The notes under the pieces are model-generated. The model was not told where the DNA came from. It did no database searches and worked only from the letters and a program-made list of their open reading frames with translations. Source: Klebsormidium nitens (taxonomy: Eukaryota; Plantae; Klebsormidiophyceae). From it: a stretch of DNA of 64,000 nucleotides. Made by a program: the position numbers and the translations under genes. Every line of letters starts with the position of its first letter. Positions within the stretch are counted from its first letter, which is position 1. The stretch is from positions 62,001 through 126,000 of the forward strand of contig DF237084.1 in assembly GCA_000708835.1 (NCBI GenBank), written 5' to 3'. Shown piece by piece: positions 19,990-45,167 of this stretch.

Positions 19990-21005
19990 TTAGCCCATCG
20001 ATGCTGTGAGTGCGCCTGTAGAAATGTTGAGCCGGCTTGACCTGGCCACATGAGTTGCATTTCTTGCCTGATAATTACGCTGGCATGTTTTGCAGATTGT
20101 ATGAAGCGAAGCTTTCTTCCTGTAAAACTCGCTTGCTGCTTTCATTTCGCTGCACACGCGACACCGTCGTGGTACTTCCTCCAGCACCTTGTGACCCAAT
20201 CGCTTCCAGCCATCGCTGTTACAGCTCCTGCACAAATTCCTTGGTGCGCGCACTCCTTGAGAAGTCGCGCGCTTCCTTGAAAACACCGCAACACCTGCAG
20301 GTTATGCCCCTATCCCAGGCCATGTCTACGTCCCAACCTAGATGATGCAGCTCTCTTTTTGCACGCTTTGCAAAGAAAACCGCCCTGCATGCTCGGCACG
20401 TGTCTGTCCGCCCATCTCGAGTACATATCGTCTTCTCAAAGTCTACCAAAGCTTTGCACGCTGACACTCCAAACACTTCTTCAAAACACGACCCTCCGCT
20501 TCATCAAATGAGATTCGTGGAAGATTCATGTTCCAGATCTTTCGCATTTCCATTTGAAGAACCTGGCTGCCTTTCCCCCTCCAGCAGAACCGCCCTGGCA
20601 CTTGTTAATCCAAGCCTCACAGGCCAGCGGTGCCTCAAGCAAACCTGTCCTGCCAGCGCTCGAAGGCTTAGCACTGGTTGTAACCCAATAAAAGTGCATC
20701 AAATCCAGAGCAGACCCGGCCAGAGACGTCCCCTCCCCTGCTCTGTGATTGTGCAGCTTGACTGCACTAGGACGCCATGCTTGTGCAATTTTTCTGTGCC
20801 ATCCCCAAAGTTGATGTGACAGGCGCGCGGGCCAGGACTCAATGCTACAGGCGCTGCCATAATTGTGAATCACAATGGACCGGAAAGCTGCGACACGTTG
20901 GTCAATTCAGTTGCGCGCTGTAGCAGCTTGAAGCAAGGCAAGAAGAGAGGTTCCATACGCTCCTGTAAGCAAGCGCCCCTGGCCCTTTGCCTTGAATGTT
21001 GCCAT
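19990..21005 (-). pseudogene. Zn-ribbon tandem-repeat protein, paralog A (decayed)
   Basis: ATG 21005 (MATFKAK..LLQAATARN*). Then KKCLECQRAKL/frameshift/VDFEKTICTRDGRTDTCRAC-x-RELHHLGWDVDMAWDRGITCRCCGVFKEARDF/frameshift/NLCRSC..RRCRVCSEMKAASEFYRKKASLHTICKTC. It aligns by eye with paralogs B and C and has at least 2 frameshifts plus stops. Confidence 0.8.
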
Positions 21006-21740
21006 TGAAGTTTGAAACATGCAGAAAGGGGATGCAGCCTTACCTAAGCTTGAATTCAGAATTCTGCCGCGACCGTGACTGGACTCGGACTCTAGTCTGG
21101 AGTCCGTTGGTTTTGCCGGTTTTCTGCGAAGCCAGGCAGGGTGATCCCTCAGCACATGGCCGTAATCATTGGATGGTGCCATTCATGATGGCTCGGAGTC
21201 CATGGCTCAGGCGGCCGGGCTGGCAAACAGGAGGTGCCAGGAAGGAAGGAGGCTGCATTGAGCCATGGATTCAACACAGGCTGCAGGGCCCAGGCACACG
21301 TCCTGGCATACTCATGCAGCGACAAGGCGGCCAGAGCATCAGAAAAGGTCGAGCTGGGCGCCATTATGCAGACAGAATGAACGTTGATGTCAAATTTTGC
21401 GTTGGTGGTGCCAGCTACTCATGCAAATGCAGGTTATCTGGTCGCGTATACCTAACGTTTTAGTTTCCACCCTCTTTCCGCAAAACTCAACCTTCGATTT
21501 CCTGCTTCAAGTTGATCAACAACTCTCTTCAAGGATTAGGTGCATTGTTCCTGAGGTGATTTCTTGCATTAGGCTTTCGATCTTCTCCAAGAGCAGCAGC
21601 AGGTCCAAAGATAAGACTCCTGCAGCAGCCTCATCTGCAGCTGAACACGCCTCTCGGAGCATCCACGGCCTAGTTACTAGTCACCCACAGCAAAGTGCTC
21701 GACTGCATCAGTAATCAAGACTGTCGTTTTCTGCACCAAA

Positions 21741-24700
21741 ATGGCTGAACCCGCATTGAGGCCCCTTCCTGACTACAGCAACTTGCTGTCTGTAAAAGAC
21801 AATGTGATCCTGGTGACTGGAGCGTCTTCCGGCCTGGGGGCTTCATTCTCAAGATTCCTTGCCAATCAGGGAGCCAAAGTTGTGTTGGCAGCCAGGAGAC
21901 TGGACAAGCTGGAAGCACTTGTGGCGGTGAGGTCCAAGACCGCTGTTTCTTGAGCATCTTTAGCTTTTCTTGACTCCTCACTTCTTTCGTCTCTGACACC
22001 TGACAAGTGCTCAGAAGATCTATCTCTTACTCGCTAAGTTTCCCAAAGTCGAACCTTGGCATTCATTTTGCATTTTTGCATCAATGCACGAGGCTCCCTG
22101 TGAGAAAAGCGCCACAGGAGGTCTGCAAATTGAATGCTGAATTTGGTCTGTTTCTGCTCGGAAGGTTTTGGGTGCCGCTTCAAGTGTGAAAGCTAAAGCT
22201 GCCAATTCACAATCTGGTCTTTGACATGATAGCAATGTCGGGCGTAATAGTGGTTAGGCATCAAAGAAGTGAAGGGATTGCCATGTCATCAGAAGTTGCG
22301 AGTTAACTCTGAAGCGCGCAGGCCGGGCTTGCACGTTGATTGAGAATTGAGAATAACTCCATGAATATCCGAAGCAACGGGGTAGCTATGGGGTATGCAA
22401 GTCTGTCCCTTCAAGCCTTGACAGGATCCTTGCAGAAGGATATACAAGCCGGTGTCCAAAAGTGCTGAGGGTTGTGAGCTGGTTGCTCTAATTTTTAACT
22501 TGGGTGTCTGTCATAGGCCTCACTGCTCAATAATGTGCATCTGGCTACTTAAGCTCATGCGCCATAGCGCCAAGAGTACATTTTAAAATCAAAGCCAGAG
22601 GTCTATCTCTTCTTGGATATTGGTGCGGACTTAACGTACATGTACTAGAACAGTCCTTGTTTCGAGAGAGCTGGACACATAATTCCACGACACACTTTCA
22701 ACAACCGTTTCAATCATTGGCCTATGTCGTTTGATCCTCAGTCTCAGAGGCCATTGGCTTTGCCTCGTGCACATATCATGTTCATGAGCTGACATGACTG
22801 CACAGGTTACTAAATTGTGAACAGGTTTATCCTGACGCCATTCTTGAGCATGGACAAACGTATCACCTTGCAACACAAGTTCTAAATAAGCGGTATCAAT
22901 GAAGTGCTTTCTCTATAAACTCCCGCAGGATATCAAGGCAGCCGGTGGAGAAGCTGCGGCAGTGCAACTAGACGTGGGTGCCGGTCAGGAGAAGGTCGTG
23001 GCGGGCGTTGATGAAGCAATCGCTGCGTTTGGTCATATCGATGTGTTGGTAAGACCTCGCTTGGATAAATAAACAGCCAAATCACTGCACGTGACCAGCG
23101 TATCTAAGAGCTGTTTCCTTGCTTAGGTGCATTCTGCCAGGCCCTTGTTGCTCGGAACTCTATGGGATCTACGATTCTGGCTTTGCATACTGCGGCTGAC
23201 GCGGGAGCATCATGAGCCTCTCTTCTCCTTAATATGAACAACAAGGACCGCAAGATGTAGGTCCGGACAAAAATGCTCACGCGTTTGTCAACCCAGCAGC
23301 TTTCTGGGGCTTTTTAGGATTCATGAAAAACGAACGAGGTTTTTCGCATTCGACGGAGGGGCTGTTTGGAAGGGTGCCATTTCTCACCAGAAGCATAATG
23401 AAAACGGAACTCGCCTGTAGGTGCTTTGTTCAACATTTCTCCAATTGTGGGGCCTGCCAGATCTGGGCTTCTGAGTCGCCTCTCCTCTGAACCTCTTGTT
23501 TTGACTCTCTCCCTCACGGCACGCTTCTTTGTATCCTCTTTTTCGATTAGATTCTCGATCTCGAAAATTGGTCTCAATAACACATTTGTTCATATCTGCA
23601 GCGCAACCGTAATCTGCAACAATCTTCTCCTGTCTTCAAAGATTTGTTGGGTGCGACTCGAACTCTTCGTCATTGAATTAATACTCTTCTTTCAGCTGCC
23701 CTTCTCATTCTCCGTGTCCAGTAAAGCTGATTGCCACCGTACAGGTAAACAACGCGGGTATTTATGAGGGCGGAGCTTTCCCCAACGACACGCAGGCCAC
23801 GTTCGACCGCTCCTTCGGTGTCAACGTTGGGGGACTTTTGTTCACGGCTCAAGCCGTGGCGAAGCACATGATTAGCAAAGGAATCAAGGGCCGAATCATC
23901 AACAACTCGTCGAACATGGCGTTTGAGGGTTTGGTCATGAAGGGGTCGGAGATCTACTCGGCGACAAAAGCGGCGGTCGTTCAGATGACCAGGCAAGCTG
24001 CTCATATTTTAACTAATGTGATCTCAATTTCAGGAAGTCAGATCTTCTTAGAGACTGGGCTCTTTTACTGGAGGATGGGGCCTGCTGTTAACGTATCCAC
24101 TCTCTACTGGGAGCAAAGAACCACTGATATTGGGGCTGTTGCCTCCTGCTTCGCTCTACGCTTTCAAAAAGTGTGGCTCTTCGCTCCAATCGCCTTCGGG
24201 GAGCGAAGAACCACTCACTGAAAGCACTTGCTGATTTCCGGCGGCCCTTTGAAATCATCCGTCAGCTGCTGTTCCGTTTACGAAACCTTCTGCAGATTGC
24301 CTCACCTTTCAGGCGCAGTTTGGCAGTCTAAAGAAGAGCATTGGCCAGCGTCCGAGTAACGACGTGAGGCCGGATCGTTGGGATCGTTACTCAGTCCAGT
24401 CGTCAAGGTGGTCGTATGGATTCAAGTATTCAAGTATGGATTCAAAGAGTGCTCCTGTTTTTGTTTCCGCATCCTGGCTGACTTAAACTATTCAGGAACT
24501 GGAAGCAATATTCTTGCAACAGATTGACCAGCTGACTGATCAGCAGGTCTGTCCTCGGTACGCTCATGGCTATACAGTCTGAGTACTGCTTTGGGCATTC
24601 GAGTAATCAGCTCCTACTTCCTGACTCTGCTTGTACTGCAAATCAATTTCAAACCGTTCATTCAGTCGTGCTGAAGACTACGGGTAAGCAGGCTTTCGAG

Positions 24701-26102
24701 ATGGAGCTTTCAAGCTGTTGAACTTATGTTACTGGGTTGAAAAGATCGTCAAATACTGCGGCTTTGACGCCCAGCTGCATTGTAACCTGTAAACTTTACT
24801 TCTGGATACGTCCTGAGAGCTTCGCCCAATTCAACCGTCGATCCGGTCCGGCTGAAACAACCCAGGAAGTCTTCGCTGGGTTCGCGCCCTAGAATGACGA
24901 ACAACCAACGACCCACCAACTTCTAAGTAGTCGAAAAGTGTCGCTTGATCCTTTCCGCAGAGTGATGGCGGTCGACCTCGCCCCCAAGGGCATCACAGTC
25001 AACTCGATCGCGCCCGGCGTCCATCCCGGCACAGGGATGACCGGGCCGGTTGCAGAGCACACCAAGCAGGCGGTCAAGGCAATCCCCGATGGCAGGTACG
25101 TCAGCACACCGGTTCTGTGGACAACACCAAACAGTCGGTTAAGGCAGTGCCCGATGGCAGGTACGTAGCAAACCCGTTCTTTAGTAGGCCACATCTGCGA
25201 TTTGTGCAGCCAGAACGGAGCGCTTCCTGTCGGAGTTTGGAAGGGCTGGCCAACGGTTGGAACCCAGGTGCGTTCGTAGGAAGCGGTCGCGTGTGACGGC
25301 CAATGAAGCCTCGTCTGCTGGTTGGTCTCACCGCCTCCCTACAAGCGGAGCGGTTGCGTACGTTCAAAGCGCGTCTTGCTTTGAGCTTGTACTGAGCGGC
25401 ATCACATCCTCAAAAGCTGCCCGATGAGGTTGAGGCTTTCGAGCGAGTTCTTGTTTCCTTGATTGAGGTTCTAACTTCTCTTGTACGCTCTACTCGCTGA
25501 CAAAGCAGGTATAATCGCACGTCTACACCCTCATGAGTGCAAATAGTTCACGCGCTGCCTCATGTGTCCTACAACCCAGACCTTAGCTTTGACCGCCTCT
25601 TTCGCATCGGGTCCGCTTTTCAACAGCCACTCCATATGCGGATCCTTCTGAGTACCATCAGGAGGGGACGCGTCACATTCTGTCCCTGAAAAGTATTTGA
25701 ACAGCGACCGCGAAAGGTGCGTCCGACACACACTTGGATACTTTGTGCTGCGCGCTCAAACTCGGGCCCGTTGAACGCAGGGTCAACATGTTGCAGCGCC
25801 AGTCTGTAACTCATTTAGGTGCGACATCACCAAAATCCGACAATGCACTATCCCCCGCCTTCCGTGGACGTATCGAACACCTCGTCGAAAAGGAAGTGTT
25901 GTCCTTGCGTCTAAGGGCCCCAACAAACGTTGGCTGTGCGTGCAGGTGGGGCGACCCTGACGCGACGGACCTGATGGGCACTCTCCTGTTGCTTGCGAGC
26001 GAGCGCGGGGCGCGGCACATGGTGGGTGCGATCATCCCCATCGACGGCGGACATCACCTGTACACCATGGACATGTTTAATCCGACCGGCATCTTCCAGT
26101 GA
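21741..26102 (+). CDS. classical short-chain dehydrogenase/reductase
   Basis: Exons 21741-21927 ([12 protein letters not shown]), 22929-23048, 23745-23992 (VNNAG..YSATK catalytic YxxxK), 24961-25095 (ITVNSIAPG), 25946-26102 (IPIDGG). Intron 23993-24960 is GC-AG. Confidence 0.92.
25064..25166 (+). repeat. duplicated SDR exon end plus donor (65-bp offset)
   Basis: aagcaggcggtcaaggcaatccccgatggcag|gtacgt (donor 25096) versus aaacagtcggttaaggcagtgcccgatggcag|gtacgt (25161). Confidence 0.85.
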
Positions 26103-27434
26103 GGAGTGCAAGGGCGAATATTGATCACAACGAAGCGCTTGTGGAATTTTCCACGGAAAGACGTGCGCGTTGAAATAAGGTCTAGTGCAGGAATGAAAGG
26201 CGCACGTGCAGGATTTGGAGCTTGCACGAGTTTTTGAAATTCAAGGAATGAACTTGGTGGGCTGTATAGGGAGTGCGTACAACGGATTTGTACTGTAGTG
26301 TGAGAAAATTTCCGCATGCATGACAATTAATGTGACAATTAAATGTAACCTTGGAGGAGCCTTGGACTCAGCCGCCTTGGACCTTACAAGCTGCTAGCTT
26401 ACAAAAGAGCTATGCTCAGGACAAGTGAGGGTATATATTGATGACTGGGTTAACTACTACTGGTCTTGCATAGTGCACTAGGCGGGCAGCAGTGTGCCAT
26501 GCAAATTGTCGACGCATCGTGGAAGCAAGCCCCCCGGCAGCTCTGGTGTGGATCATCATGCCAGTAAACCAAAGGGACTGCATGTGGTACTGATAGTTGG
26601 GCCGATCAATCATGCAGTCATAACGACACTTCGACGCCAGCCACTGCGTACGGCTAATCTTCACTTATGCAACTATGTGAAAGCTCTGATCGTCGACAAG
26701 CCATGCATGAGTTTGCAATGCATGGCATACTGCCAGCTTGCCTTTCATTTGTACATGAGCTTTGAGTGACCAGCGGGATCTGACAATCCGTGAAACTTTT
26801 AGGAACAATTATAACCCACACGATTGAGTCAATTTGAGCGCAAAGGTCCCGCGGACAGGCCGTTGTTTGCTTGAATTCGAGAGCGCACTCCTATACGAGC
26901 GATTGTTGCGTTGCCAGGTTTTGTCAACTTCAGGCTTATGCAAGCCTGACTCTGACCTTCCAAAAATTTGAACGCATGTCATACATGTGAACGGACTGGT
27001 CATGTTGCAACTTGAAGTTTGCAAGAATCGCATGCAGCAAAGAGAGTCTAGTATAACACGGGCACGCAGAAAATATGCATGACACGATAGTTCTTCCATT
27101 GGTACGGATTGATCCCTGGCTCCTCGACCTGGTCTTCATAGCTGACGGGTGGCGTCTACCATCAAGTGCTATCACAACTATGGCGGATCAGATCCTATCT
27201 GAGCGTTGCCCTCTTTTGACTGTTCGTTGCTCCAGGCTTTACCTTTGCATACAACGGGCACTACCGACGACCCATGCAGTCGTCTTCGCTTGGAGCCACA
27301 ATCGACCACCGACAGTCGGACTGGAAAGCCCCTGGATTGTGAAGGAAAACTTTAGGAGGGGAGCGGATGCTTGGATCACACGACTCGGCATCCGGGCATA
27401 GCCTTCCAATCTTCAAATTTCCTAAAGAACCTGA

Positions 27435-27536
27435 AAAGGGCGAAGGCCGACTAGGCGGATGTGCGAAGACTAAAGGGCGGTTCCGAAAGGGCGACGGCCG
27501 ACTAGGCGGATGTGCGAAGACTAAAGGGCGGTTCCG
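27435..27536. repeat. near-perfect 51-bp tandem duplication, intergenic
   Basis: aaagggcga(a/c)ggccgactaggcggatgtgcgaagactaaagggcggttccg x2 with one mismatch. Confidence 0.95.
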
Positions 27537-29399
27537 TTCAGGAGATGAAGAAAGAGATGCGACGTTCTTTGAGTTGCAGGGCCAAGGAGTGGATTCAATT
27601 GCTCCTGCACTGTGTGAGCGAACAAAAGCGAGAGACTGGCACTTTCTCGGGGTTCAAGTTCAAGCACGGACGAAGAGACGCTTCATGGAGGCTTTAAGAA
27701 ACGGTCATAAGAACGTAACTTCGAGCCGTCAACACAAAGTACGAGAGCGGTAGTCGAGAAGGAAACTCCAACCTGGTACGACAATGTAGTGCACCCGAAC
27801 ACAGATTGCAGACACCCCAAACAGCCACCAAGGACCTGATAGGACAGAAGGACGAGGACAGGAGGAGCACAAAAGTTCTACTGCTCTGGCGGACGCGTTG
27901 TACAACAGACGTGCAATAGAAAGAAAACACTGGAGCCTAGTTCTCTTCCAGCCCCGGGAGAAAAGTTTCGTGCCACGAGCAGTCCAGAATTAAACAGGCT
28001 ACAGAAGCGTCTGATGCGACTCGTCAGCATCAGACGGCTTACGTTAGGCTCCACCTGTTGGGAAGTCATGTCCTTCCGGCGCTCTGTCCCTCAGACCAGC
28101 CAGCTGACCAGCTCGTGGGTCCGATCCCCGCCCAAGGGAACAAGTTGCCCAGTAAGTCGTGAGGCTAGATGACGTCAGCCAAGCCGTCGCTGCTGCTGGA
28201 ACCGTGCCGATGTGGTGTGGGCTGCTCTACTGAGCCGATGCAGTGTGGAATAGTGCCAGTGGCGCAAAACCGGCGACTTTGCAGCAGGGACGAGGAATCT
28301 TGTGGAAACGATGGCAGCGGTCTGCGCGTGTGGGCCTGCAGGGGCGACAGGGATTGGGGTCGACACCGCAACCGAAGACAATTGTGGCTGTAATGCTAGA
28401 GTCTAGATCCTTTGCACGCTCTTTTGCAGGCGCCTCTTAATCTCGTCTTTGGAGCAGATTCTCACAGGACCAGTCTCTGGTCACCTGTAGCTTCACGAGA
28501 CCCGCAGGCAAAGCTTTGGGCAGGACGACGCAAAAGGAGGCAGGAAATGTGTTTGGCTAAGTCGCGAACGTCCAAACCTTGGCCAGTCAGCGGCTGCTCA
28601 ATTACTGGATTCTGTGCCAACCTGCTTGCCTGCATTCCACGGTCGGACATGGCTTGTGAAGGTGAACTCCACGCCCCCAGTTGTAAAACGGACATTCCTC
28701 TGGCTCGGCTGTTGGACCCCGATTTTTGCTTGTCAAGACTCGATAGAGTAGGACCATTGTTTCAAAAGCAATTAGCGCAGAGGCCAGCTCATACGAGCAA
28801 GGTCTGAGGCAACTTGCAGGGATATAGGTTAGAAACCAGTTCCCAAGAGCTTGTCTCTTACCGCAAGTGCCGCAGCTGAGTGCCTCACGTCGAAGAGCTT
28901 TCGCTTCGTCTGAACCGTGCATGGCACAAGGTGCCGCGCATCTCCCAGAGTCAGCCGAGAGCGGACCACTACTGGTGACGTAGTCGGAGTCTTAAATGCT
29001 GTCAGCGTCGGATGCTCGATCGACATGGCGACTCAGCGTCCTGAATGAAAAGACATGGCGCCTTCAGCGTGAAAGATGTCAAATCGCGCGAAAGGAAAGT
29101 TCGAGTCAGCTCGTCGATCTGCAATAGCTGTGACAGGAACATTCCGCTTCGTCCCGACCTCCCAAAAAGGATTGAACTTGTATGAGTTGAAGAGTGGAAA
29201 AGACGGACCCTATGACGGTCAACAGCCTTTGGGGAAAGTAACCTGTAGAAGTGGTGGAACTGTGCATTGTCTTCGAACACGATAAGATGAATGGTGATCT
29301 TGCGAATCCGAGTCTTGCTAGAAACACCATCATCTGACACTGACACTTGATGCACACACCCTCGTCTGGATGAGCGGCAAACAGTTGGTGACAAGATTC

Positions 29400-30846
29400 T
29401 CAAAATATAGTCGCTCCCACAGAAGTTATTGTACTATGCTGCCAACATTGATAACAAGAGATGCGATGGACAGCTAGCAACCGCATAGACAATGAGACTT
29501 TACCGCATCCTCCAAGTTCTGAAAAACCTCCTGAGCTATTGAAGGCTGCTTCAAGATTGTTCAAGATGGCCCTTACTGTCGAGGAAACAAGCATACTGCT
29601 CCAGTCAATGGCAACAGCATTTTGGTGTGTTCCATGCTCCACAACGTGTTCCAACGATCTCCCATCATGCGCTGTACCCTTGCAAGCAAAAAGACGGCGG
29701 CAACCGTTTTGCAGAGCTTGCAAAAAGCTAACCTCATTTTGAATAATGCAACAAAAACGCTCACCTTTCAGCAGCTTCCCCCTGCTGACCCCTTCCATCA
29801 TATTGTCTGGCTTGGCATTAGCCCCCATGCATGAACGCTGTTCAGAAGCTTCCTTTAGTCTTCTCTTTCGAGCCCGCTCTACGGGTTTTACGCATCCTTT
29901 ACAGCAGGACTTAAGACCATCGCTGCTGTACTTGTTTTTGTAGAAGTCGTCCGCCGGTTTCACCTTTCCACAGATGCCACACTTTTTGTCTTTTGTCTCC
30001 CTTTGGAAGATACATGGAAGCCCTCTTTACAATTGTCCGATAGTGTGCTCCAGATTTGTTCTGGCATGCTTTGCACTTGCGAATAGCCCTTGCAAGTAAA
30101 CCATTCCATTTGGCAAATTCTCCCGCCAGCTTGATCTTACCACACACATTACACTGGCGCGAAGTTTCCGGCGGCACATCATGCAATAGCCTGCTTGCCA
30201 TTTCGCTTTGACAGCTCCGGCAATGGCTGGCCAGCTTATCCTTCCGCCCCCGATTTCTAGCAAAATCTCGCACTTCCTTAAATACACCGCACACAGGGCA
30301 AACCTTGCCCTTATCCCATGCCAGCTCCAAGCTCCAAGCCAGATGATGCAATGGTTTCCCTGCTCGCCGCAACCGGAAAGCAGCCAGGCATCCTCTGCAG
30401 GTGTCTGTCCGCCCATCTACACTCGTCTTTGTTGTCTCAAAATCCACATGCAGCTTTTGACGGTGGCATGTGGTGCACTGTTTACTTGGGCCAGGTCCAA
30501 CAGCAGGCCCAGGTTGTTCCGCTGCCTTTGGGACACTGTCCTTGGTCTGACTGAATTTCCTGTTGCTGATAGATGAGGCTGACCGGAGCTGATTGATTGC
30601 TTCGTCTTTTGCAGACAATTGAAGAGCCAGTAAAATGCCAGTCAGCATTGGCAGCTTTTGCAGCTTGAAGCGGCCAAGGCCCCCCTCGCAAGCCTGCTGA
30701 GAACTTACATGAGCGCCGGAAGTTGCTTGACAAACCGCACTGGTTGCTACCCTTGGAACGATGTTTGTTGCCGCTTGGAGGATGCATACTCTACTTGCTG
30801 AGGACCCCAAGAGGGGCAGAGCTCGAAAGAACGTCGCTGCCTGCAT
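29400..30846 (-). pseudogene. Zn-ribbon tandem-repeat protein, paralog B (single frameshift)
   Basis: ORF 29911-30846 carries repeats 1-3 (CTTC..CRGC, CPVC..CRSC, CNVC..CKAC) and ORF 29400-29963 carries repeat 4 (CGICGKVKPADDFYKNKYSSDGLKSCCKGC). Removing one copy of the 7-bp duplication TTTTGTC (29984-29997) joins them in frame into 479 aa. Confidence 0.85.
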
Positions 30847-31639
30847 TCAGTATCAAGGAGAGGAAGAGCGATAGCTGCAGCCCTCCCTGATGCCGTATAA
30901 CGAGCTGATACCTAGTAAGGACATGATGATGGAGCCCCATGCATTCCCTTCAAGTTAGAAGACACTCTGAAACTTTCAAGACGGAAGGGAAGCGGGCAGA
31001 ACGGAACAATGGAATTGAATGGAAATGAGAAAGCTGTTCCTTGAGGGAAGATTCGATTTTCTGCTCACCGCCGTCGAAGCGATGTGTTCGAATAGGATAA
31101 TGGCCCCCCTTTTTGCTTGCCGGCGCTTCCGGACAGGTCTACATCGCGGAACTGTTCCAGGTAAAAAAGCGCTGACAGCCAGAACTGACGGTTGTTTCAG
31201 CAGTTTTGACCGCTTCGACGACTTCTTGAGACGAAAGAAGTCAATTTTCTCCGTTTTATTCCCTTGAACTTCATCCCAAGCCATGCACAGAAGCTAGGCC
31301 AGCAGTTGTGCGCAACACCCAGCTTCGAATGCTGATCAATTTCCGTTCTCTCAAGTCTCTTCTGCTGAACGCACGTGCTGGACTGCCTGAGGCAGCGTGG
31401 CATTGGCGCTGTCAAAGTTCTTCCCTGAAGGGCATTGCGTAATACTGATTATACAGGAACGATTCACGAAGCATACCAGAAGCATCAGTGTTTGATGAAC
31501 CGTGGCAAGTTTTGTCTGGGCTTGCAGTCAAGTTTCGGCGTCTTCCATGTCCAGAACCGAATGTTCTGGCTTGCTTGAGCTGCTGCCTGGACCAGTGGTA
31601 CTGTGGCCAGCTTGGGGGCATTAACACACCCTTCCAAAG

Positions 31640-34600: not shown

Positions 34601-36212
34601 GAAACCGCTTGAAAGTGGTGCTGCCTCAACTCAGATATCAGAGAATGAGGATTGACGCGGTGGAGCCACCGGCCAATCCGCCGGCAATGCTTTGGACAGC
34701 TCAGCCTCCGAACGAGGTCGCTCATAAGATCTCCTCGTCGATCTAGTTCTGCCTCCGCCTTTCTGACCGTTCGACACGTGTCAACTTGCAGCCGACCCGG
34801 CTGACGGCACTCCGCCCCCAAAGACGCCGCCCGACCCGCTCCCCACTCTCTCCGAGCGTCAGCAAGCGTACGAGGAGGCGCGCGCGCGCATTTTTGCCCG
34901 CGATTATTCGGACGGGATTGGCGGACCGTCCGAAGACTACGAGCGGACGACCGAGAGGGAGCGCCGCGTGCCGGTCGTGGCGCAGCGGCTGATCGGGCGC
35001 GCGCTCGGGGTGGCGACCGGGGGAACAAGGGGTGGGGAGAACTTGCGGACGGGGCAAAATGGGGCTCGGAATGATGAGAACGGTCAGCTAGGAGTAACGA
35101 GTAGTAGAAATGACTCGCAGACGGAGGGGAACTTTAGAAAGGGCGAGAAAACGGGAGGGAGCGATTGCATCGAGAAAGGACCGCAGACGGGGGTAACTAG
35201 GGATGGGGAAAATGAAGGTCGCGGCGGAGCGAGGGTTCTGAAAGCGGTACCGGGACAGGCCAGTCTCGGGGAAATGGTAGAAAGACGTGGCGGTGCGGAA
35301 AACGCCGTCCGCCTTTCGGACGCGCGACGAGGAGTGGAAAAGGGCGGTACGGACTGTGAGGGAAAGGAACGTAAGGATTGTGACGACGGGCTGCAACAGC
35401 GGGGCTTGGAAAGTGCGCATGAGGAAACGGTAACTAGAGGTGACGGGAAAATGGTACTGAGCAAAGAGAGCGGCGGGAAAACGCTGGAGGCGGAGCGGAA
35501 GTCGTACCGGGGAGGGGGTCGAAAAAGAGCGACGAAGGCGCGCGACGGGAGCCAGTCCGGGAAACCGTCAAGTCCCAACGAAGTAGGAAGGGGAGAGGTT
35601 TCGAACGGACAAATTGAGGAAGCGAAGAATGGGGAGACAGGGGACAGCCCGGTGAGAAACGCGGTTCAAAATTTCGACGAAGATGGCGCGTCTGCAAAGA
35701 CGCCTTCGCACACAGGGTTACCGGAGCCAACCACGAGTTTGGCGGTGGATAGCGTTCAAAGGAGGGCGGGAAAGAGTCCCGGGCAGGGGGCGGGCGCCCG
35801 CATGTTTCGGATGGCACTTCCAAGGGGACAGGTTGGTCAGCGGGTTCGGACGGAGAGAAGTGTCCGAACGGGGGAGCTGCCGAAGGACGAGACAAGTGCA
35901 GGAGAGAGGCCGTGTCGAGAGTCTTTTCGTGCTTCTATTCAGAAGGATGTAGGTGACGTTGAAAATGGTCGAGATGTCTCCAATGTTTGTCCAAGTAAAA
36001 GAGAAGAAAGCTCGACAAGAAACAGTGATGCCGGTGAGTCCCAAGAATTCGAATGCAGAGATACGCACGCGTCGCGTCTTGAAAGGGATGAAGCAGCGGA
36101 GAAGGTAGAGTCAACAGTGAAGCGGAAAGGTTTGCCCCTTGTTGCGGGTAAGATGCTGTCGCATGCGCTGGGCCTCACGCAAAGGGGTTGGGGTCAAGTA
36201 GGCAGACCTTGA
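31640..36212 (+). CDS. R3H- and SUZ-domain RNA-binding protein with a long disordered C-terminus
   Basis: Exons 31640-31684, 32299-32399, 32757-32831 (LPPASPYFRMLVHRLVEAFG, RxxxH), 33360-33431 (HVSFGEGEDRHIVL), 33925-34013, 34792-36212 (TLSERQQAYEEARARIF, SUZ motif). Phases are consistent; the first exon is less certain. Confidence 0.85.
33090..33186. repeat. 49-bp tandem duplication in an R3H-gene intron
   Basis: ttctg(a/g)acattttgt..gattgaag(t/a)aggatccaggt(t/c)cgtgcattc x2. Confidence 0.9.
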
Positions 36213-37172
36213 TTCTAGGTTGTGCGTAATGAACGACCAGAGTCCAGTCCGACTGCCTATGCGGCTACCTATACTGCACCTGCCCCAATACTTCATCACC
36301 CGCTTACATGGGACTGCCCAATCGACTTCTAGTGTGAGCTGGATGTTCCATGACAGACGGTCATATCTTGCCGCTCATTGGAGTGTTTGTCATGCCGTAA
36401 ATTCGAGAATTTGCTGGCTCAACGTGAACGCGTGAACGCTTTCAAGCTATGTTCGGCGAGTCGTTCGTACGTGCAGTGTTGGGTCATTCGAGTGATCATA
36501 GACCGTCCATTTATACGGCCCTCTAGGTTGATTGGACACTTTGATAATACCATAAGCAAAACCTGATTCGAGTATTATAATGCATAAATTTGCAATTCCG
36601 AAAGATCCAGGGGAATCGACGATCAAATTCGCCCTGCTTAAGTCGAGTCCGGTCAACATGGGTGTCTTTTACAAGTAAGCCTCAAGCTGGCTTAGCACGC
36701 GCTTTTAAAATTGCAGTTGGCAAAATAAAATTCTTCAACACAATACTATAGGAATGCAAGTCTGCACATTGACAACGTATTTTGGCAAGTCGTAATAAAG
36801 TTTGATAAAGATAGAGCATTGTTCCGGGCTAGCTGCATGACGGGCCATCCGCGCACAGGATTCAAACCAGGATCGGAACTTGGACAGCATCTTCTTGGAA
36901 TATGTAGCTGCCTGACAATCATGTACTTATTCACCAATCACGCCGCCCGGCGCACAGAATCTGATGCAAAAATAAAAGACAAGACGGTAGTGATAACGGT
37001 GGCACCACATGCATTACTCAGACGCGGCCGCCACAGGGGGACAGTGACACTCTACTGTATCATTCGGTGAAGCGATTGGCAATTCACATGTGCATTTAAA
37101 AGCGGAACAGAGCAATAAAATCTACGTGAAGGAGATTGCAGCGACTCAGACGACGGACTCTCTAGAAAATCG

Positions 37173-40100
37173 CTACGAAACAGCCTTTCTGTCACAGGGT
37201 TCTTGCAGCTTTAGATGTTGCTTGAGCCGCCGAACTGCCTCCAGCAACACGGCGTCGGTCTTGCAGAAAGCAAAGCGTATCAGGTGTTTGCCCTCCGCTG
37301 GATTCCTGCAACCAGAAAGAGAATCAATCAGCGCACTCAATCAACCATCCGGATAGCGGAGACTCGCCGGAGCCGTTTTGAAGGCTTGTTCCGATTCTGC
37401 TTTCGAGTCTATTGTACAGGACAAGCCCAGTTCTTTTACAGCAACCGAGTGCTGCACGTCCTTCCGGGAAGAGGTCATGACATACAACTCAGGGCTAACT
37501 GAAATGCAAAGGCCACGACAACCAGGTCGCAAACCTGTGATGGTTGGAGTTGCACTTGAGAGAGTGAAGCTATTGGGCGGTCAAAAACTGGATGCCTTGA
37601 GAGGATGCCGAATAAGGTGCTTGCTGAAAAGCCCTTTCATAAACTTCCTTGGCAATCGTGAGGGGGGAAAACCTGCGCAAGAGGGTGCTCACGAGTAGAA
37701 GCCGCTAGGGGGAATAGCGGCAACGCCCACTTTCTCGATCAGGTGCTTGCTGAATGCCACGTCATCGTCGAAGCCGAATGGCGTGAAGTCGGCCATCACA
37801 AAGAACGATCCCTGCGGCTCAAACACGTTGAATCCAACCTGCAAGCAGAGTGTCGGGGAATAACAATTGAAAGTCTAACGCTGGGCAATCAAAGAGGCCT
37901 TTCTATCACACTCGTATCACATCTGATACAGCGGGTCAGGCGAAGCCCAATACTGAGAGAGTGGCAACGCTGGCGCTGTTGACAGTCTCCAGCGGGGCAC
38001 CGGTCGCTTTCGACTGACTAAACGACTGATTGGCACTTTTCAGAGCGGGGTTTGTGAGATTATCCGCCTTCTGCGATACTGGTCTGGGGTTGCCAGTCGG
38101 GGATTATGAGGCACCAACAAGCCACCAAACCGTTTTCTGCCCGGTCTCATGAGGTTCTTGACTAGCTAATTAGCTTGAAACGAATCGCTTCGACAATAAT
38201 GGACATTGGCATACCCTGTCTTCAACCTCATATGCAAAGCTATCTGCAGTTTGACGGAAAGAGCAATATAAGGCAATGTTACGTGGTGAAAGTCACGAGA
38301 GCGACCGGAACTCGCGCGGATGGCGACTCGTTTGAAAGAAAAAGAATCTGATCGAGTCGACTGGAAGGCTTGCAAAGATTGACAAATCCGGACGGAAGGT
38401 CACGCAAACAGTACTCTCAGCTTTGCCGAAAACTAGGAGGGGTTTTAAAGAGTAAATCAGACTACTCGGTGTCCTCCCTTCCTCACCTCTCTTAGGCCTA
38501 AGAGATAGCATCCAATTGAGTCGACAGGAAGGCTTTCAGAGATTGTAAAGAATTGGACAGAAGGTCACGCAGACAGTACTCTTTGCTTGCCGAGAAGTAG
38601 GAGAGGTATTAAAGATGAATTCAAATTACTCGGGGTCGTCCCTTCCTCACGTCTCTTAGGCCTAAGAGATAGCATCCAATCGGATCGACGGGAAGGCTTG
38701 CGGAAGTTAGCAAGATCTTGCCAGAGGTAACGCAAACAGTACTCCTGGCTTTGCCGGTATCTAGGCGAGGTTAAAGATAATATGGGGGTACTCAGTGTTG
38801 TCCATTCACTCACGTCTCGTAGGCCTTCCAGCAGGATGTCTCTTCGCCGCGTATAGTCCGCCCGGACCTGCGGAGTGAAGAGACTCTGCTTTACTCCTCC
38901 AACCACTCAAAAGCGCTATGCACATTCCGCTGAGGTTGAGAAGTTGCTCATAGGTCGGAACAGGATACAGAAGGAGCAGAACACAGGAGTCGCGTTACAG
39001 TGATGCAATGTAACAACCACAATCAACTCATGCATTCCTCAAGCGCGTTGCTTGTATCCTGCGCGGTCGAACTCGCTCTTGAAGAGCAATCAAAAGTTTG
39101 AGCAAGTAAGTGTCCGTGTGCACTGCTTAGCCGCTTGCGCCCTGTCCAAGATTGCCATGTTTACGCCAGTATTGACGCACCCAGGAGATGACGACGGGAA
39201 TGAGTTGCTGTCAGTTCGACAGAAGTCTGAGCTCGGCAACGGGTGCGACAACTTGCTCTGCCAACTGAACTTGCGTCTTCTTGTCGGTTCGTTTAATCTG
39301 CTGAAGCCTCAGTCGGCCCCATACGACATATTTCAAAAATGATTTGCGGAAGGTACTAGAGTTGAGCAACTCAGACAGGAAAAAGCGGGAAAGCACGAAC
39401 TGGACAAGCTATTCGAAGGGCACGACAACAAAGGACGCCGACGAACTACCGGACGACCACACAAAGCGAGCACAAACGAGGGTACGGTGAAAGAAACTAA
39501 AACGTTATGAGAACCCCCCACCTGTTCGTAAAATTGGGGGGGCGCCCGTAACGCCGCGGCGGCCCCGTGCTGCAGCGGCGTCGCGACCGAGAACGTCACA
39601 AACTGGTGCGCCATGCGGATGGCGTGCGACAGCGGCGGGGGGGCGATCGCCCAGCCAACCTTCCACCCCGTCAGCGAGAACGTTTTCCCGAGCGAGTTGA
39701 GCGTGACCGTCCGATCGTACATCCCAGGCAGCTGGGCGATTGACACGTGGCAGGCGCCGTTGTAGAGCAGGCGGTGGTAGACCTCGTCGGAGAAGACGAG
39801 GGCGTCGTGGCGGGCCGCGAGGTCGGCGATGAACTGGAGCTCGCTGAGAGAAGTGACGTTGGCGTTACTACAACATAACATCAATGTCTTGTCAGACGCG
39901 ACATCAGGAGTAAGAAACGAGGACGATACACTTGCAATCGTGGAAGCCCTTTGCATGTAATCAAGTCTCTGTCGGCTAGAAAGCGGAAGTCAAAGTTTCC
40001 AGAAACGAAACAAGACATCTAGGAAGTTGTTTCGATCTCGCTGGTGTTGGGCGTGACGTGAGCGCATTGCCGCGCAAGGGTGCAAGAAGCAGGAAAGCGG

Positions 40101-42617
40101 ATGGTGAACGGGCTATGACGTCAGCGTCGGTATGTCAGGGCGAAATCAAACAAGGCGGAAAAGTTGAAGCCAAGAAGTTAGAGGGAAAAAACCAGCTTCG
40201 ACAAAGAACCAGCTTCGACGAAGAACCAGCTTTGACAAAGGACCAGCCTCGACAAAGTATCAGCTTCGATCTGCACAAATGATGTACTTTGACTTCTCCA
40301 AGGACAAGGTGTCTTTTGAGGGAGAGGGACGCATTACGAGAAGACGTCAGGAAACGTCGGAAGAAAATGAGTATTGAATCAAAGAGGGTGGGCTGCAACG
40401 CACCTCTCCGTGAACACCCGCCCCGTCGGGTTGTGCGGCGTGTTGATCAGGATCACCCGCGTCTTGCTGGAGAAAGCCGCGCTTAGCTCGTCCCGCGAGA
40501 AGGAGAAGTCGGGGGGCCGCAGCACGACCGGCTTGACCATCGCGCCCGCCATCGCCATCGCCGCCTTGTACGAGTCGTCTGCAAAAAGAGCCCCCGGTCT
40601 CTGATTGCTTTTGTTTTTTTTTGTTATTGTTATCATTGATTTTGACGTCCCCCCCCTTCTGTTAGTTGTATCCTTTATCTCTATTCTTTCGTCTTTCGAG
40701 TGCCTGATGTGATGGATGGAGGGAGAACATGAACTTCCTCAACGGATGCCAGTGACACCCACTAGCTATCACTCCCTGCGATTGAGATTTTTAGGAGGGA
40801 ATTCAAAGTCGGTGCCGTCGATCTGAGAGAGTATAGCCAAAGGGGTTTCCAGGGAGTTTGCTGCGAAGTTTTGCTCTCCTTCCGGCCTTCATTTCTGAAA
40901 GCAGCCGCCAATGGAGCAGCTTTTTTGTGGCAGGAACTCGGAGCAGTCCCCATAGATTGCCGGGTTTCTTGTCCTCCTTCCTTCTCTGCTCCTATGACAC
41001 ACTCGCGCTACCTAGCTGGAAGTAGCCAGAAAAGGCAGTCGACTTACGAACCCAGTGGTGGTCTAACCAGCGCTCGTTTGAGAAACCAATGGTCAGCGAG
41101 TCCTGACGTCCGAAAGAATTATGATGGGGTACCTTTTCTCTATTTCATAAGCCGGCCTATCGCAGGACTTGGCCGCGCCCTCCTCTGCCTTTGTGAGAAA
41201 CATATCTGCCTCTGTATGTGTAGCCGCGAAAGTACTGGAAAGCGTGGAGAACCAAGTCGACGTAAGAGATCTCCAATGCCGGTTCATTTCGACCAGTAGA
41301 TCGAACTCTTATGAATGCACCAGAATCAGTCATACAAATCGAGTGCGGCATGAATTCAAACTTCCCCTTCTGAGTTTCACAATGCTTATCCGAACTTGTA
41401 AAACCGCAACGACGATGCTGACGGCGAAAGGTGAGGAAAGCACGAGGTTTGCGGAAGAAGACGGTTGGGGAACAAAAACCTCCACCCTGGCACGCTGGCT
41501 CCGAGTACATCAAGTCCTGTGCCCCGAAATTCCACATTAGTAAAGCGAAGCTGGAGCTTGAAGATGAGAAAAGGCAAAGGGGCAGTCTGCACTCACATGC
41601 CGGCTCAAAGACCACAACCTCGTCCCCTGGGTTGCAAAGTCCCAGGAAGGCGCTCGCAATCGCTTCCGTGCACCCCGCAGTCACCGTCACTTCCTTTTTG
41701 GCATCAACTTCAATTCCCGTGTCCCTCTCAAACACGTCCGCGATTTCTGTCGCAAGATCGGGCACCCCCGTCATTAAAGCGTATTGGGACTTCCCATCTC
41801 GTATGGCCTGGATGGCCGCCTCTTTGACGAAGTCGGCGCCGTCGAAGTCGGGGAAGCCTTGGCCCAGATTGACGGCTTTGTGTTGCGCTGCGAGGGCGCT
41901 GATCTCGGTGAAGATGGTTTGGCCGAAAGAGGAGAAGCGGTCGGCTACCTGCGGGAGTGCATGGGCGGAACGGGTTTGCTTATAACCAGAGTCTGTGTTA
42001 AAAGAGGGGTAGGAGAGGGTCTGGAGAAACAGAGAGGTGCACTTCTGCAAGTTGTGGGAGATCGAAAGGAGAGGGTGGTATGGTCAAACAATGCATAGTG
42101 GTGGCCTATTGTGAATGGAAAGAATAGTGGTCAGGATCATTCTCTAAGCGACCAGATCCTGGGAGATGCAAGATAGAACCTCTTCTGAGTGTTAAGGTAT
42201 GAGGGCTAATCTTATCGAGGGCGACAGTTCGTGCCCGTCATTGGATCTTCACAAGGAGCCTGGCTTCGAAGCAGAAGTTCCAAGAAAAAGAAAAAGTCCT
42301 TGCCGATCAGACTTGTCCAGCAATGGCCATCTCCATCGACAAGACTCATCATATATAGAGATGTTACTGTAATGTACGCAGGAGTGTACCATCAGCACAG
42401 GCAGTCCATCTCTATGGATTTGTAAAAAGGCAACATTCACGGACAAGAACATCAAAGACTGCCTCTTATGATACAAGAAAGGGTGGTTTACCTGCGTAGT
42501 TTGGCGGCTTCCAGCTACGCTGCCATTCGCAGTACTAATGGAAGACTTAGGGGCACCATCTTGTGCTGCAGGTTCAGAATCCTCCCCAGAACCTGGAGTG
42601 TGTGTCGTGCTGGCCAT
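37173..42617 (-). CDS. class I/II PLP-dependent aminotransferase (kynurenine/methionine aminotransferase-like)
   Basis: Exons 42617-42492, 41948-41597 (AVNLGQGFPDFDG), 40578-40404 (INTPHNPTG), 39843-39522 (SDEVY..SLGKTFSLTGWKVGW with the PLP lysine), 38867-38814, 37838-37693 (PQGSFF..GVAAIPPSGFY), about 37306-37173 (IRFAFCK). Confidence 0.93.
38350..38830 (-). repeat. tandem triplication (163-164 bp unit) covering the aminotransferase exon end, donor and intron start
   Basis: ggcctacgagac|gtgag (true donor 38813), ggcctaagagac|gtgag (38650) and ggcctaagagag|gtgag (38486). The internal motif tcgac.ggaaggct recurs at 38357, 38521 and 38685. Confidence 0.92.
40191..40269. repeat. 17-bp minisatellite x5 (ACCAGCTTCGACAAAGA) in an aminotransferase intron
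   Basis: Units start at 40191, 40208, 40225, 40242 and 40259, with no spacers. Confidence 0.9.
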
Positions 42618-42975
42618 AGGATACTAGAATGACAACAGCCGTACTGGTGATCGCCTTACACTGGAGTGATTCCTCCCAAGTTGTATTGACTGGAAGAACT
42701 GGGAGCTGACAGATCTGAGTAATCTGAAGCTTCAGGAGGTCCCTAGGGCAACTTGTCCGGGTCGGAAATATCTGACCCGTTATCTGGAGATATGATGGCC
42801 AGGGTAGTGGTGCCGCCAAGCTGGTGCCACTTCAATCAAAGCAATGCTGATCCGGAAGCTGATCCCCTGTACATAGAAATACGCGGATTGTCCACTGCCA
42901 ATCAATCTACGAACTGTACAGCTCAAGCGATCCTTGGTCTTGATCAGAATAAAGGCTTCCACTAGTTGGTCAGGC

Positions 42976-43363
42976 CAGAGGGCGCAAGCACCAGGCAAAA
43001 TCCTCGTGCGAGCAGAATTGTAAGTGGACGGGTCCTTGCATTCTCAGGTGCCCACAAGTTCGAAAGTGCTCCAATATGTTTACTGATGCTCTGAAAAGGT
43101 TTCCGCCAAATTCTGGTGCTAGCTGACCATGTTTCTCAACAGCCAAAAAGAAGGGGTTTTAGCTGGTAGAAGCAGACATGGGTCCACTCTTCAAATGACA
43201 CCAGAGGCTCCACCGGCCGGGCGGACCCAAAAACCGGTGCCAAATGTTGCTAAAGGACCATATAAGACGCCTGCAAAATTTTGTGGACGCCCCCGCGGTG
43301 GAGCCCCTATGGTCTGCTCGCGACTGGAGCTCAATTATTTTGCCTGGGTGCTTGCGCCCTCTG
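42976..43363. mobile_element. 388-bp hAT-like MITE
   Basis: TIR CAGAGGGCGCAAGCACC(C)AGGCAAAAT (26/27 bp, one indel). Perfect 8-bp TSD GGTCAGGC at 42968-42975 and 43364-43371. An 8-bp TSD and CAG terminus are typical of hAT elements. Confidence 0.9.
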
Positions 43364-43394
43364 GGTCAGGCTCCCCTTTCCTTCACAGTCTCTA

Positions 43395-43671
43395 CAGTCA
43401 GTGCGCACGCTCGTGGTGCCGGCAACAAAAGTTCGGAACCGTCCATCGATGGGGGCAGCCCCCAACTTCGACCCTCCGGACCATCCGATGGAGGTCGCAT
43501 TTATTGCTCTCTGCCAACCGCAAAGTCGGCCCCTAAACTTCGCCAGCGACTTTTGCACGAGATTTGAGTGAGGGCGTCGCCGCGTTTCCGAACTTTTGCT
43601 TTGACACATTCGCCCGGCGGTCGGTCAAAAGACCCGTTGTGTCAAGAGGCCCAAAACGTGCGTACTGACTG
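43395..43671. mobile_element. 277-bp Tc1/mariner-like MITE
   Basis: TIR CAGTCAGTGCGCACG / CGTGCGTACTGACTG (1 mismatch) plus internal inverted CAAAAGTTCGGAA / TTCCGAACTTTTG. The left flank is TA but the right flank is TCTA, so the TSD is imperfect. Confidence 0.7.
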
Positions 43672-44108
43672 TCTAGAGTTGCTTGTGGCTTGCTTGTCTT
43701 TCTGAACCTTCTGAATGTCCAAGCAAGGACTCGGATCGAGACAGCCAAGGTTCCTGAATCTGATCGACACCGATCGAGGTTCACGTTTTAAACATCGAAA
43801 ATACTCCTGTACGTCATCGGAATGGCCGGCACCCCCCGGGTTAGCTCAGCCAGAAACGGCATCAGAATTTATATATATTGACTGTACAACGACGTGGTTA
43901 AAATTCAAAAACCGGCATACTGCCCGTCAGCAAAGCTTTTGGAGTCCCTTCGACGGCAGCCTTCGAACAGACAATGCTGCGTTGCTGAACCTAAATTTAA
44001 ATTTAAATGCTAGGCAATGGCTGCCTCCTACTCTCTTCGCAGGTGCTCTTTCTCACCTACGTAGGTACATCAAGCCATTGGCATTGGATAGCTTACTCGT
44101 TGCCAAGG

Positions 44109-45167
44109 ATGGCGACCCTCTTTTCCTCTCTGCTCTGCACGGCTCATTCATCTGGGATCTGCCCCAAGTCCATAGGGGTCGCTCCTGATTCAACATCGTG
44201 CCTCTTAGGCGAAAACAGAGCTTGGCTGGCGGAGTGCTGCAATGGTCGTGTCAGGGCAAGGGACGCGGTAGGTGGACAAGCCCTGCTCCACTCTGTTCCC
44301 TTCCCAACTCTCAGCACTTTCTTGCCAGTCCTGCCTGAGCGGCCCGCTCACGTGATCTGCCGCAGAAGAAACCTTCCAAATGTGCGGGAGCATGTCGTCA
44401 GGCCTGTTTTGTTTGACAATTCGAACCAGCCAGAGCAGACGGGGACAGTAGCTCATAATGCTGGGAAGGACCCCTCGTCCAGCGCCATAGGATTTGACAC
44501 CGGGTCTGGGAGTTTGGAAGCTCCTCTTAAGAAATGCACCATGTGCAAGCGATCCAAATTTGTGGTCGACTTTGAAACGACGGTGACCACCGCTGACAAG
44601 CGGACCGAAGCTTGCAGGGCTTGCTTGGCTGCCCATCGGGCGGCGCGTACAGGAAAGCCTCTCCATCACTTGTCACTTAGCGGAGACGCGGCCTGGGATA
44701 AGGGGAAGGCATGCTTAAGGTGTAGTCATGTTAAGGAGATTCGTGACTATACCCGGAACACTAGAAAGGGTGACGGGTTTGAGATATATTGCCGAGCCTG
44801 CTTTAGCGAGATAAGGGCTGCACGCCTCGCCTTTGCGCCAGTGGATGTTCCTCAGAAATGCAGCTCTTGTGGTCAGGTGAAAGCTGCGAGTGCGTTTTAT
44901 CCAAATAAGCAGAGGTGCACCGGTCTCGCATCGTTCTGCAAGCTCTGCACTGTAAAGGCCACCTCAAAGTATCAGGCAAAAATGGCAGCGACCGCCAGCT
45001 TCTCCCGGGAAGAGAAGTTCTGTTGCGGCTGTGGCAGAACCAAGAAGGTGGCGGAGTTTAACAGGTCTCGGGGTTCCATTGACGGTTTCACAGGTTTCTG
45101 TAAGCAATGCAGGAGTGCCCGATACTCTGCTCCTAAGAGACTTTGTCCGGAGGGGCCAGTGGGCTAG
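44109..45167 (+). CDS. intronless Zn-ribbon tandem-repeat protein, paralog C (intact, 352 aa from ATG 44109)
   Basis: Four repeats: CTMCKRSKFVVDFETTVTTADKRTEACRAC, CLRCSHVKEIRDYTRNTRKGDGFEIYCRAC, CSSCGQVKAASAFYPNKQRCTGLASFCKLC and CCGCGRTKKVAEFNRSRGSIDGFTGFCKQC. The Ser/Leu/Ala-rich N-terminus has few acidic residues. Function unknown. Confidence 0.8.
   Translation: MATLFSSLLCTAHSSGICPKSIGVAPDSTSCLLGENRAWLAECCNGRVRARDAVGGQALLHSVPFPTLSTFLPVLPERPAHVICRRRNLPNVREHVVRPVLFDNSNQPEQTGTVAHNAGKDPSSSAIGFDTGSGSLEAPLKKCTMCKRSKFVVDFETTVTTADKRTEACRACLAAHRAARTGKPLHHLSLSGDAAWDKGKACLRCSHVKEIRDYTRNTRKGDGFEIYCRACFSEIRAARLAFAPVDVPQKCSSCGQVKAASAFYPNKQRCTGLASFCKLCTVKATSKYQAKMAATASFSREEKFCCGCGRTKKVAEFNRSRGSIDGFTGFCKQCRSARYSAPKRLCPEGPVG

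Follow-up and report, generated by a model that had tools for sequence, protein, structure and literature searches.

Introduction

The described systems closest to the genes considered here are the zinc ribbons that accompany certain nucleases, the fission yeast protein Stc1 and the PPR and OPR families. The genes themselves form a family of four-zinc-ribbon proteins, and three copies (paralogs A, B and C) lie in a 64-kb stretch of the Klebsormidium nitens genome (GenBank assembly GCA_000708835.1, contig DF237084.1, positions 62,001 to 126,000 of the forward strand), which is called the window below and is numbered from its own first nucleotide. The same module as in the algal family stands at the N-terminus of HNH and endonuclease VII (EndoVII) proteins of phages, giant viruses and bacteria (PHROG 1035, 2340, 2633, 2255 and 5558; YonG_N, PF27269), where tandem arrays, in this case of 3 to 11 modules, are also encountered. 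These viral and bacterial proteins begin with their modules and end in a nuclease or another tail of 100 to 230 residues, whereas the algal proteins possess a leader, lack a nuclease, and carry a fixed set of four position-specific modules with family-specific linkers.

Stc1 of Schizosaccharomyces pombe (PF12898; structure 2LUY) is an Ago1-CLRC adaptor with two fingers and a disordered acidic C-terminal tail. The algal family resembles it in Pfam matches, in the UniProt label of one member and in fold, but its proteins have four modules in one predicted body, a leader, a basic surface and short basic tails in place of the two-finger, acidic-tailed architecture. The beta-beta-alpha-Me restriction endonucleases Hpy99I and PacI (3FC3; 3LDY and 3M7K) and T4 endonuclease VII (1E7D) possess a Cys4 zinc-finger region that superposes on a single algal module; these are active nucleases with a catalytic His-Me finger, whereas the algal family has no detectable catalytic motif. 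The PPR and OPR families are similar in being nuclear-encoded, mostly intronless and lineage-expanded, with fast-diverging paralogs and presequence-like N-termini. They differ in their helical repeats and variable repeat number, in place of which the algal proteins have four non-equivalent modules in one predicted rigid domain.

We propose, with moderate confidence, that paralogs A, B and C belong to a Klebsormidium-lineage family of proteins with a four-zinc, nuclease-free, nucleic-acid-binding domain and possibly an organelle-directing leader.

Domain architecture and family range

Each family protein consists of a fast-diverging, acid-poor N-terminal leader of approximately 60 to 300 residues and a conserved basic domain of about 210 residues that holds four zinc-ribbon modules (R1 to R4), and the protein ends a median of about 20 residues after R4. 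The module has the form CxxC-x3-K-x4-F/Y-x7-DG-x4-CxxC, followed by a basic helix. Conservation was judged across 37 paralog clusters that are 31 to 63% identical to paralog C, and 36 clean family examples were aligned (alignment A3). All 16 cysteines were found to be conserved in these divergent clusters, with 12 of them invariant and the remaining 4 kept by 90% or more, as were the lysine three residues after each first CxxC, the aromatic residue five further on, and the arginine of the C-R-x-C knuckles in R1 and R2. Two linkers are conserved, LHHL..AWERAK and P.D.PQ; in the former, which joins R1 to R2, H57 is invariant and L58 and W66 reach at least 90% in alignment A3.

Each of the four modules has its own conserved signature, and the linkers between them are nearly free of insertions and deletions and almost constant in length. 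Exactly four modules were present in all examined full-length members of this architecture, with a few of the listed representatives scoring three. The most variable part of the module is the stretch from the aromatic residue to the DG pair, which lies in a hairpin. The domain as a whole is strongly basic (21% Arg and Lys versus 10.6% Asp and Glu).

An exhaustive profile search of 1.84 billion representatives returned 13,130 matches at E < 1e-3, of which 88 were found at E < 1e-30. Among the best 150 matches, approximately 50 to 55 representatives (at 50% identity) share the exact design of a leader of 60 to 300 residues, four modules and a short tail. The other top matches are arrays of 3 to 11 modules that begin at the N-terminus and end in nuclease or unknown tails. 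All traced family members lie on Klebsormidium-like DNA with a guanine-cytosine (GC) content of 0.49 to 0.53. They come from SRR23617307 (six family proteins, a probable seventh, P0008, and an unannotated copy on contig L006), SRR14092358, JGI 3300060284 and the K. nitens reference genome (GAQ78261.1), with the assignment of the Logan and JGI contigs to Klebsormidium resting on synteny, GC content and the one named K. nitens member. The traced members are unnamed or called hypothetical protein, and UniProt lists P0022 (GAQ78261.1) as a Stc1 domain-containing protein.

Large hypothetical proteins of chlorophytes were also recovered, namely P0144, P0112, P0107 and P0086 from Myrmecia bisecta and Apatococcus species, P0087 from Bryopsis and P0148 from Ostreobium. 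These carry at least four canonical modules embedded in low-complexity sequence rich in Gln, His and Pro, without the LHHL..AWERAK linker, and Pfam detected no nuclease domain in them. To judge from their sequence, they look like nuclear regulators.

Module identity and the absence of a nuclease

The module is a Stc1/YonG_N-type zinc ribbon of phages, giant viruses and bacteria, in which it occurs singly or in arrays before HNH and EndoVII nucleases. PHROG families annotated as Lar-like, endonuclease VII, endonuclease and HNH matched at E values between 1e-22 and 1e-10, in every case along the N-terminal accessory segment of the profile, and the matches to PHROG 5558, 1035, 2340 and 2633 (1e-22 to 1e-12) place the algal modules among the accessory zinc ribbons of HNH and endonuclease VII proteins. 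The top structural matches in BFVD were HNH or beta-beta-alpha-Me proteins of pithovirus, clandestinovirus and medusavirus together with phage HNH and EndoVII proteins, with E values down to 6e-14. The nearest ESM Atlas clusters were viral Stc1, YonG_N, HNH and EndoVII, and a cluster named YonG N-terminal was the nearest by shape (template modelling (TM) score 0.37). These results agree with the resemblance to zinc-binding segments N-terminal to HNH and endonuclease VII nucleases of phages and nucleocytoplasmic large DNA viruses that had been noted in the initial annotation of the window.

Pfam Stc1 (PF12898) matched 24 of the 37 members at E ≤ 0.01, with a best value of 1.7e-8. Paralogs C and B scored 21.9 and 15.9 bits, both under the gathering cut-off of 24.8 bits, and both also gave sub-threshold matches to Pfam His-Me-finger accessory families. 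Faint precomputed matches to YonG_N were available for P0001, P0002, P0004, P0006, P0007 and P0015. NCBIfam returned no match for paralog C or P0014, and sequence profiles A1 and A3 had no significant match in the PDB, with Stc1, Hpy99I and PacI recurring among the sub-threshold rows.

No catalytic HNH or EndoVII domain (PF01844, PF02945, PF13392 and similar) was detected by Pfam in A, B, C or the 37 family members, as had been anticipated from reading the window; a positive control, P0027, with six modules, did match Pfam HNH at 7.6e-10. We found no literature on the family, so that its description as uncharacterised stands, but the module itself is not nameless given its Pfam matches to Stc1 and, faintly, YonG_N. 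The match to a characterised domain family is a partial one, as Stc1 is recovered in many members, yet its sole studied representative, from S. pombe, differs in architecture. In its architecture, the family represents a new variant within a known zinc-ribbon superfamily, and it is expanded in Klebsormidium.

Predicted structure

When 37 sequences were supplied to AlphaFold, the four modules were packed into one body with a predicted local distance difference test score (pLDDT) of 92.8 and a predicted template modelling score (pTM) of 0.81, and all five models reached a pLDDT of at least 91.7. With six sequences, the modules remained separate (pLDDT 71, pTM 0.31), and the arrangement as beads on a string that this smaller model had suggested was rejected after the 37-sequence model was obtained. 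The R1-R2 linker is helical at high pLDDT in the larger model. The four modules are thus predicted to form one rigid four-zinc body.

No PDB or Atlas entry matched the whole four-module body (best TM score by query 0.43), and the PDB structure matches were to single modules or module pairs only. A single module superposed on the Cys4 finger region of Hpy99I with a Z score of 5.1 (root-mean-square deviation 2.3 Å over 42 residues), while the matches to PacI and T4 EndoVII were weak (Z 2.3), and these values may reflect only a common small zinc fold. The tandem finger of Stc1 (2LUY) was the top or near-top Foldseek row in the PDB, with LIM, RBR and E6 zinc modules at weaker ranks. As modelled, the four-zinc fold of the family is predicted with confidence and has no counterpart among solved structures.

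It had been proposed from the sequence of the window that the repeats make up a modular array similar in logic to PPR and OPR proteins. Because the module number is fixed, conservation is position-specific, the linkers are near-invariant and a single body is predicted, the family does not fit a variable array of that kind. On the model, the domain is instead a fixed four-zinc unit that diversifies through gene duplication.

Composition of the leaders

The leaders cannot be aligned between paralogs, yet the 36 examined consistently keep a first 40 residues that are acid-poor, net-positive and rich in Ser, Thr and Ala. Across the family, these first 40 residues have medians of 2.5% Asp and Glu, 10% Arg and Lys, and 17.5% Ser and Thr, and the first acidic residue appears at a median position of 29. 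The presequence-like character that had been noted for the N-termini is therefore borne out on composition. Judging by composition only, plastid or mitochondrial import of the protein through its leader is possible.

The three paralogs in the window

Six-frame inspection and a hidden Markov model (HMM) built from the repeats identified three loci of the family in the window and no more (Table 1). The repeat count given for them in the initial annotation was three to four, but each of A, B and C has exactly four. The three linker strings that it quoted are present verbatim, and its placement of three intronless paralogs was confirmed.

Table 1. Positions of the three paralogs and their parts in the window (ORF, open reading frame; E values are from the repeat HMM)
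Feature	Position	Strand	Remarks
Paralog C	44109-45167	+	Intact, intronless; single uninterrupted ORF, 352 residues plus stop
C leader, 140 residues	44109-44528	+	Acid-poor, Ser/Thr/Cys-rich start; weak conservation
C module R1	44529-44642	+	E = 9.9e-15
C R1-R2 linker	44643-44705	+	Family-specific LHHL...AWDKGK motif, including the invariant His
C module R2	44706-44819	+	E = 7.9e-16
C module R3	44853-44963	+	E = 1.4e-13; top single-module PDB match (Hpy99I, Z 5.1)
C module R4	45015-45125	+	E = 1.5e-13
Paralog B	29400-30846	-	Leader and R1-R3 in ORF 29911-30846; R4 and a 140-residue unconserved tail in another frame, ORF 29400-29963
B module R1	30373-30483	-	Repeat HMM
B module R2	30196-30306	-	Repeat HMM
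B module R3	30049-30159	-	Repeat HMM
B module R4	29889-29987	-	Repeat HMM
B single frame break	29983-29994	-	One surplus base within A4/A5 runs
Paralog A	19859-21005	-	Pseudogene; four recognisable modules, at least 3 frames, in-frame stops, internal deletions
A module R1	20378-20481	-	Repeat HMM; split
A module R2	20215-20302	-	Repeat HMM; split
A module R3	20077-20169	-	Repeat HMM
A module R4	19964-20065	-	E = 3.5e-13

Paralog C is colinear with its orthologs P0001 (59% identity, 352 residues) and P0002 over all 352 residues. Its start methionine aligns with that of the ortholog, and in contig L001 a stop codon directly upstream of the ortholog methionine supports 44109 as the start of C. 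The K. nitens member P0022 likewise matches its genome as one contiguous block of 321 codons, lying within an annotated gene range that is approximately 590 nucleotides longer, the excess presumably being untranslated region (UTR). An exact look-up of the C product in a collection of 153 billion genes returned no record and a word search found no protein near 100% identical, so that intact paralog C seems to be missing from public annotation.

In paralog B, the change of frame is confined to a stretch of about 45 nucleotides that contains the A4 and A5 runs, and the tblastn alignment of P0014 on B switches frame between 29989 and 29987. One surplus A is sufficient to explain the break, and its cause may equally well be a true slippage mutation or an error of assembly. 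Paralog B would then be either mis-assembled or a copy that lost its function very recently through a one-base insertion in an A run. Its positional ortholog P0014 is intact, with 311 residues.

It was also noted that past R4 the B frame continues for approximately 140 residues (29400-29888, minus strand) unlike any homolog. The relatives end sooner, with 3 residues past R4 in P0014 and about 20 in the L006 copy, and the nucleotide alignment of B to both L006 copies stops at 29893. To judge from these alignments, it appears that either the ancestral stop of B is gone or its frame continues into the 3' UTR.

Paralog A is a dead copy. Its lesions comprise in-frame stops, the loss of approximately 3 residues from R2 and a severe shortening of the R3-R4 linker. 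As none of these is a homopolymer slip, A is a genuine pseudogene. The location first assigned to A was correct, but its lower bound of 19990 falls inside R4, and the final reading frame runs on to a stop at 19859-19861. Decayed fifth repeats had further been suggested downstream of B (near 29720) and C (near 45212). These were rejected, as the repeat HMM gave no gene-strand match at either place and the sole nearby match lay on the opposite strand at E = 0.42.

Selection

Rates were estimated by the Nei-Gojobori method for C against P0001 and for B against P0014. For C, the ratio of nonsynonymous to synonymous substitution rates (dN/dS) was 0.55 over the whole gene (dS 0.46), with 0.79 in the leader and 0.42 in the four-module region. 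For B, it was 0.43 for the R1-R3 piece (0.41 in the domain) and 0.23 for the frame-shifted R4 piece. Paralog B is therefore either still constrained or was so until very recently. At similar dS, a neighbouring ORF gave 0.58. The family is moderately, not exceptionally, fast-evolving.

Host residence, synteny and turnover

GC content is flat across the window and equal to that of the host, and the three copies have no shared flanking sequence and no terminal repeats. On contig L001 (SRR23617307), the C ortholog is followed by the same multi-exon prenyltransferase gene that occupies 47.4-50.7 kb of the window, and on contig L006, P0014 adjoins the same two genes that flank B (31.9-36.2 kb of the window). 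An origin of the three copies as a transposon or viral island was rejected on these grounds. Paralogs A, B and C belong to the resident genes of the host, and copies arise and decay locally.

A second B-like copy was found on L006 (149-1090, plus strand), beyond a SUZ-domain gene; apart from a single in-frame stop near codon 24, in the leader, this copy is intact, and the window holds no counterpart of it. Together with the decayed A and the frameshifted B, this prematurely terminated copy supports the birth-and-death turnover that had been suspected from the window. On another contig of SRR23617307, L008 (8458-10885), P0007 (plus strand) and a P0008-like gene (minus strand) were observed head-to-head, approximately 220 nucleotides apart, and it is possible that this divergent pair shares a promoter.

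Function and alternative explanations

Because the domain is strongly basic, the module accompanies DNA-cutting enzymes, a basic helix follows each second knuckle and the hairpin is variable, we favour nuclease-free nucleic-acid binding, and the family domain probably binds nucleic acid. Under this proposal, a zinc-ribbon module without its nuclease would have been fixed in four copies of set number, order and spacing, which would pack through the conserved linkers into one rigid four-zinc body. This body would bind DNA or RNA, and the paralogs may differ in their variable hairpin loops and hence in their targets, with paralog C as the putative functional copy in the window.

Several observations weigh against this proposal. 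The compact body comes from one prediction method, and constraint is only moderate, as the family dN/dS values of 0.4-0.55 are no lower than that of the neighbouring ORF. The sole experimentally studied relative by Pfam name is S. pombe Stc1, whose tandem fingers serve protein-protein contact and not nucleic-acid binding. Several members have basic C-terminal tails that resemble nuclear localisation signals (e.g., RRKKK in P0022), and trebouxiophyte proteins carry four similar modules in Gln/His-rich contexts like those of transcription factors.

The last two points also speak for nuclear DNA-binding regulators, in which a module of viral or homing-endonuclease origin was domesticated as a transcription-factor domain and the N-terminal region is a disordered regulatory segment. 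The basic domain would suit such a role, the Apatococcus and Myrmecia proteins place four canonical modules in sequence typical of nuclear regulators, and a precedent exists in the proposal that plant AP2 derives from HNH-AP2 endonucleases. However, the consistent acid depletion and net positive charge of 36 unalignable leaders point to import peptides more than to generic disorder, and the trebouxiophyte proteins, lacking the family linker, may be independent arrays. We regard this explanation as possible, though clearly less probable than nuclease-free binding by proteins with a potentially organelle-directed leader. Less probable again, and in our view unlikely, is a protein-protein adaptor of the Stc1 or LIM type whose four zinc modules dock partners such as RNA-silencing or chromatin factors in place of nucleic acid. 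The Pfam Stc1 matches and the Foldseek ranks of 2LUY and of the LIM, RBR and E6 modules are consistent with it, but the similarity to phage nuclease-associated families (1e-22) is far stronger than the sub-threshold Stc1 score of C, and a highly basic domain with four modules instead of two and no acidic C-terminal tail does not resemble Stc1.

The viral affinity of the module, the pseudogene A, the frameshifted B and the prematurely stopped copy in the relative could also point to decaying remnants of a selfish or viral element without host function, either endogenised giant-virus genes or relics of homing endonucleases that lost their nuclease. This is highly improbable given that B and C lie in synteny conserved between species among intron-bearing host genes, that dozens of intact paralogs keep all 16 cysteines, and that dN/dS ranges from 0.2 to 0.55, the shifted piece of B included; the absence of terminal repeats and shared flanks and the host-like GC content argue in the same direction.

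The zinc-ribbon module that precedes phage and giant-virus HNH and EndoVII nucleases is very common, as the number of profile matches shows, and we found no functional study of it. The algal family presents this module freed from the nuclease, locked in a predicted fixed four-zinc body and amplified to dozens of paralogs within one streptophyte algal lineage that lies near the stem of the land plants. Should the domain bind nucleic acid, it would constitute a new eukaryotic DNA- or RNA-binding fold descended from a viral or homing-endonuclease module, much as has been proposed for AP2, and the family would be a tractable model for the role of the viral module. If the proteins are imported into organelles, they would add a zinc-based class beside the helical-repeat families that control organelle gene expression. 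A bolder and rather doubtful extension is that klebsormidiophytes built organelle-imported, sequence-specific nucleic-acid-binding factors from a virus-type zinc ribbon. These would have a previously undescribed fold in which the loops of different paralogs read different organellar DNA or RNA targets, and would amount to a zinc-based counterpart of PPR and OPR proteins, derived from a domesticated accessory domain of nucleases.

Neighbouring genes

The genes around the three paralogs contain introns, as had been described: the prenyltransferase gene matches its ortholog in separate blocks, and an aminotransferase gene at 38.5-42 kb is present in ORF pieces. The former (47396-50748, minus strand) is a multi-exon cis-prenyltransferase (PF01255 in the ortholog) in synteny with L001. 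Protein identity is 80-94% in the internal exons but falls to 61% in the first large ORF (49666-50748), where dN/dS is 0.58. This suggests a fast-evolving N-terminal extension, which on sequence grounds is possibly a targeting region too.

A G-rich, purine-skewed ORF (GC skew +0.2) at 34730-36214 of the window encodes a low-complexity product rich in Gly, Arg and Glu. Its ortholog on L006 (3577-5049) contains a Pfam SUZ domain, with nucleotide identity between the two no higher than 71%, and another low-complexity stretch of similar kind was noted on L002 (3210-3700). The region 54001-58000 of the window, with a GC content of 0.56, is strongly skewed in the positive direction for both GC (up to +0.25) and AT, a composition like that of the low-complexity gene at 34-36 kb.

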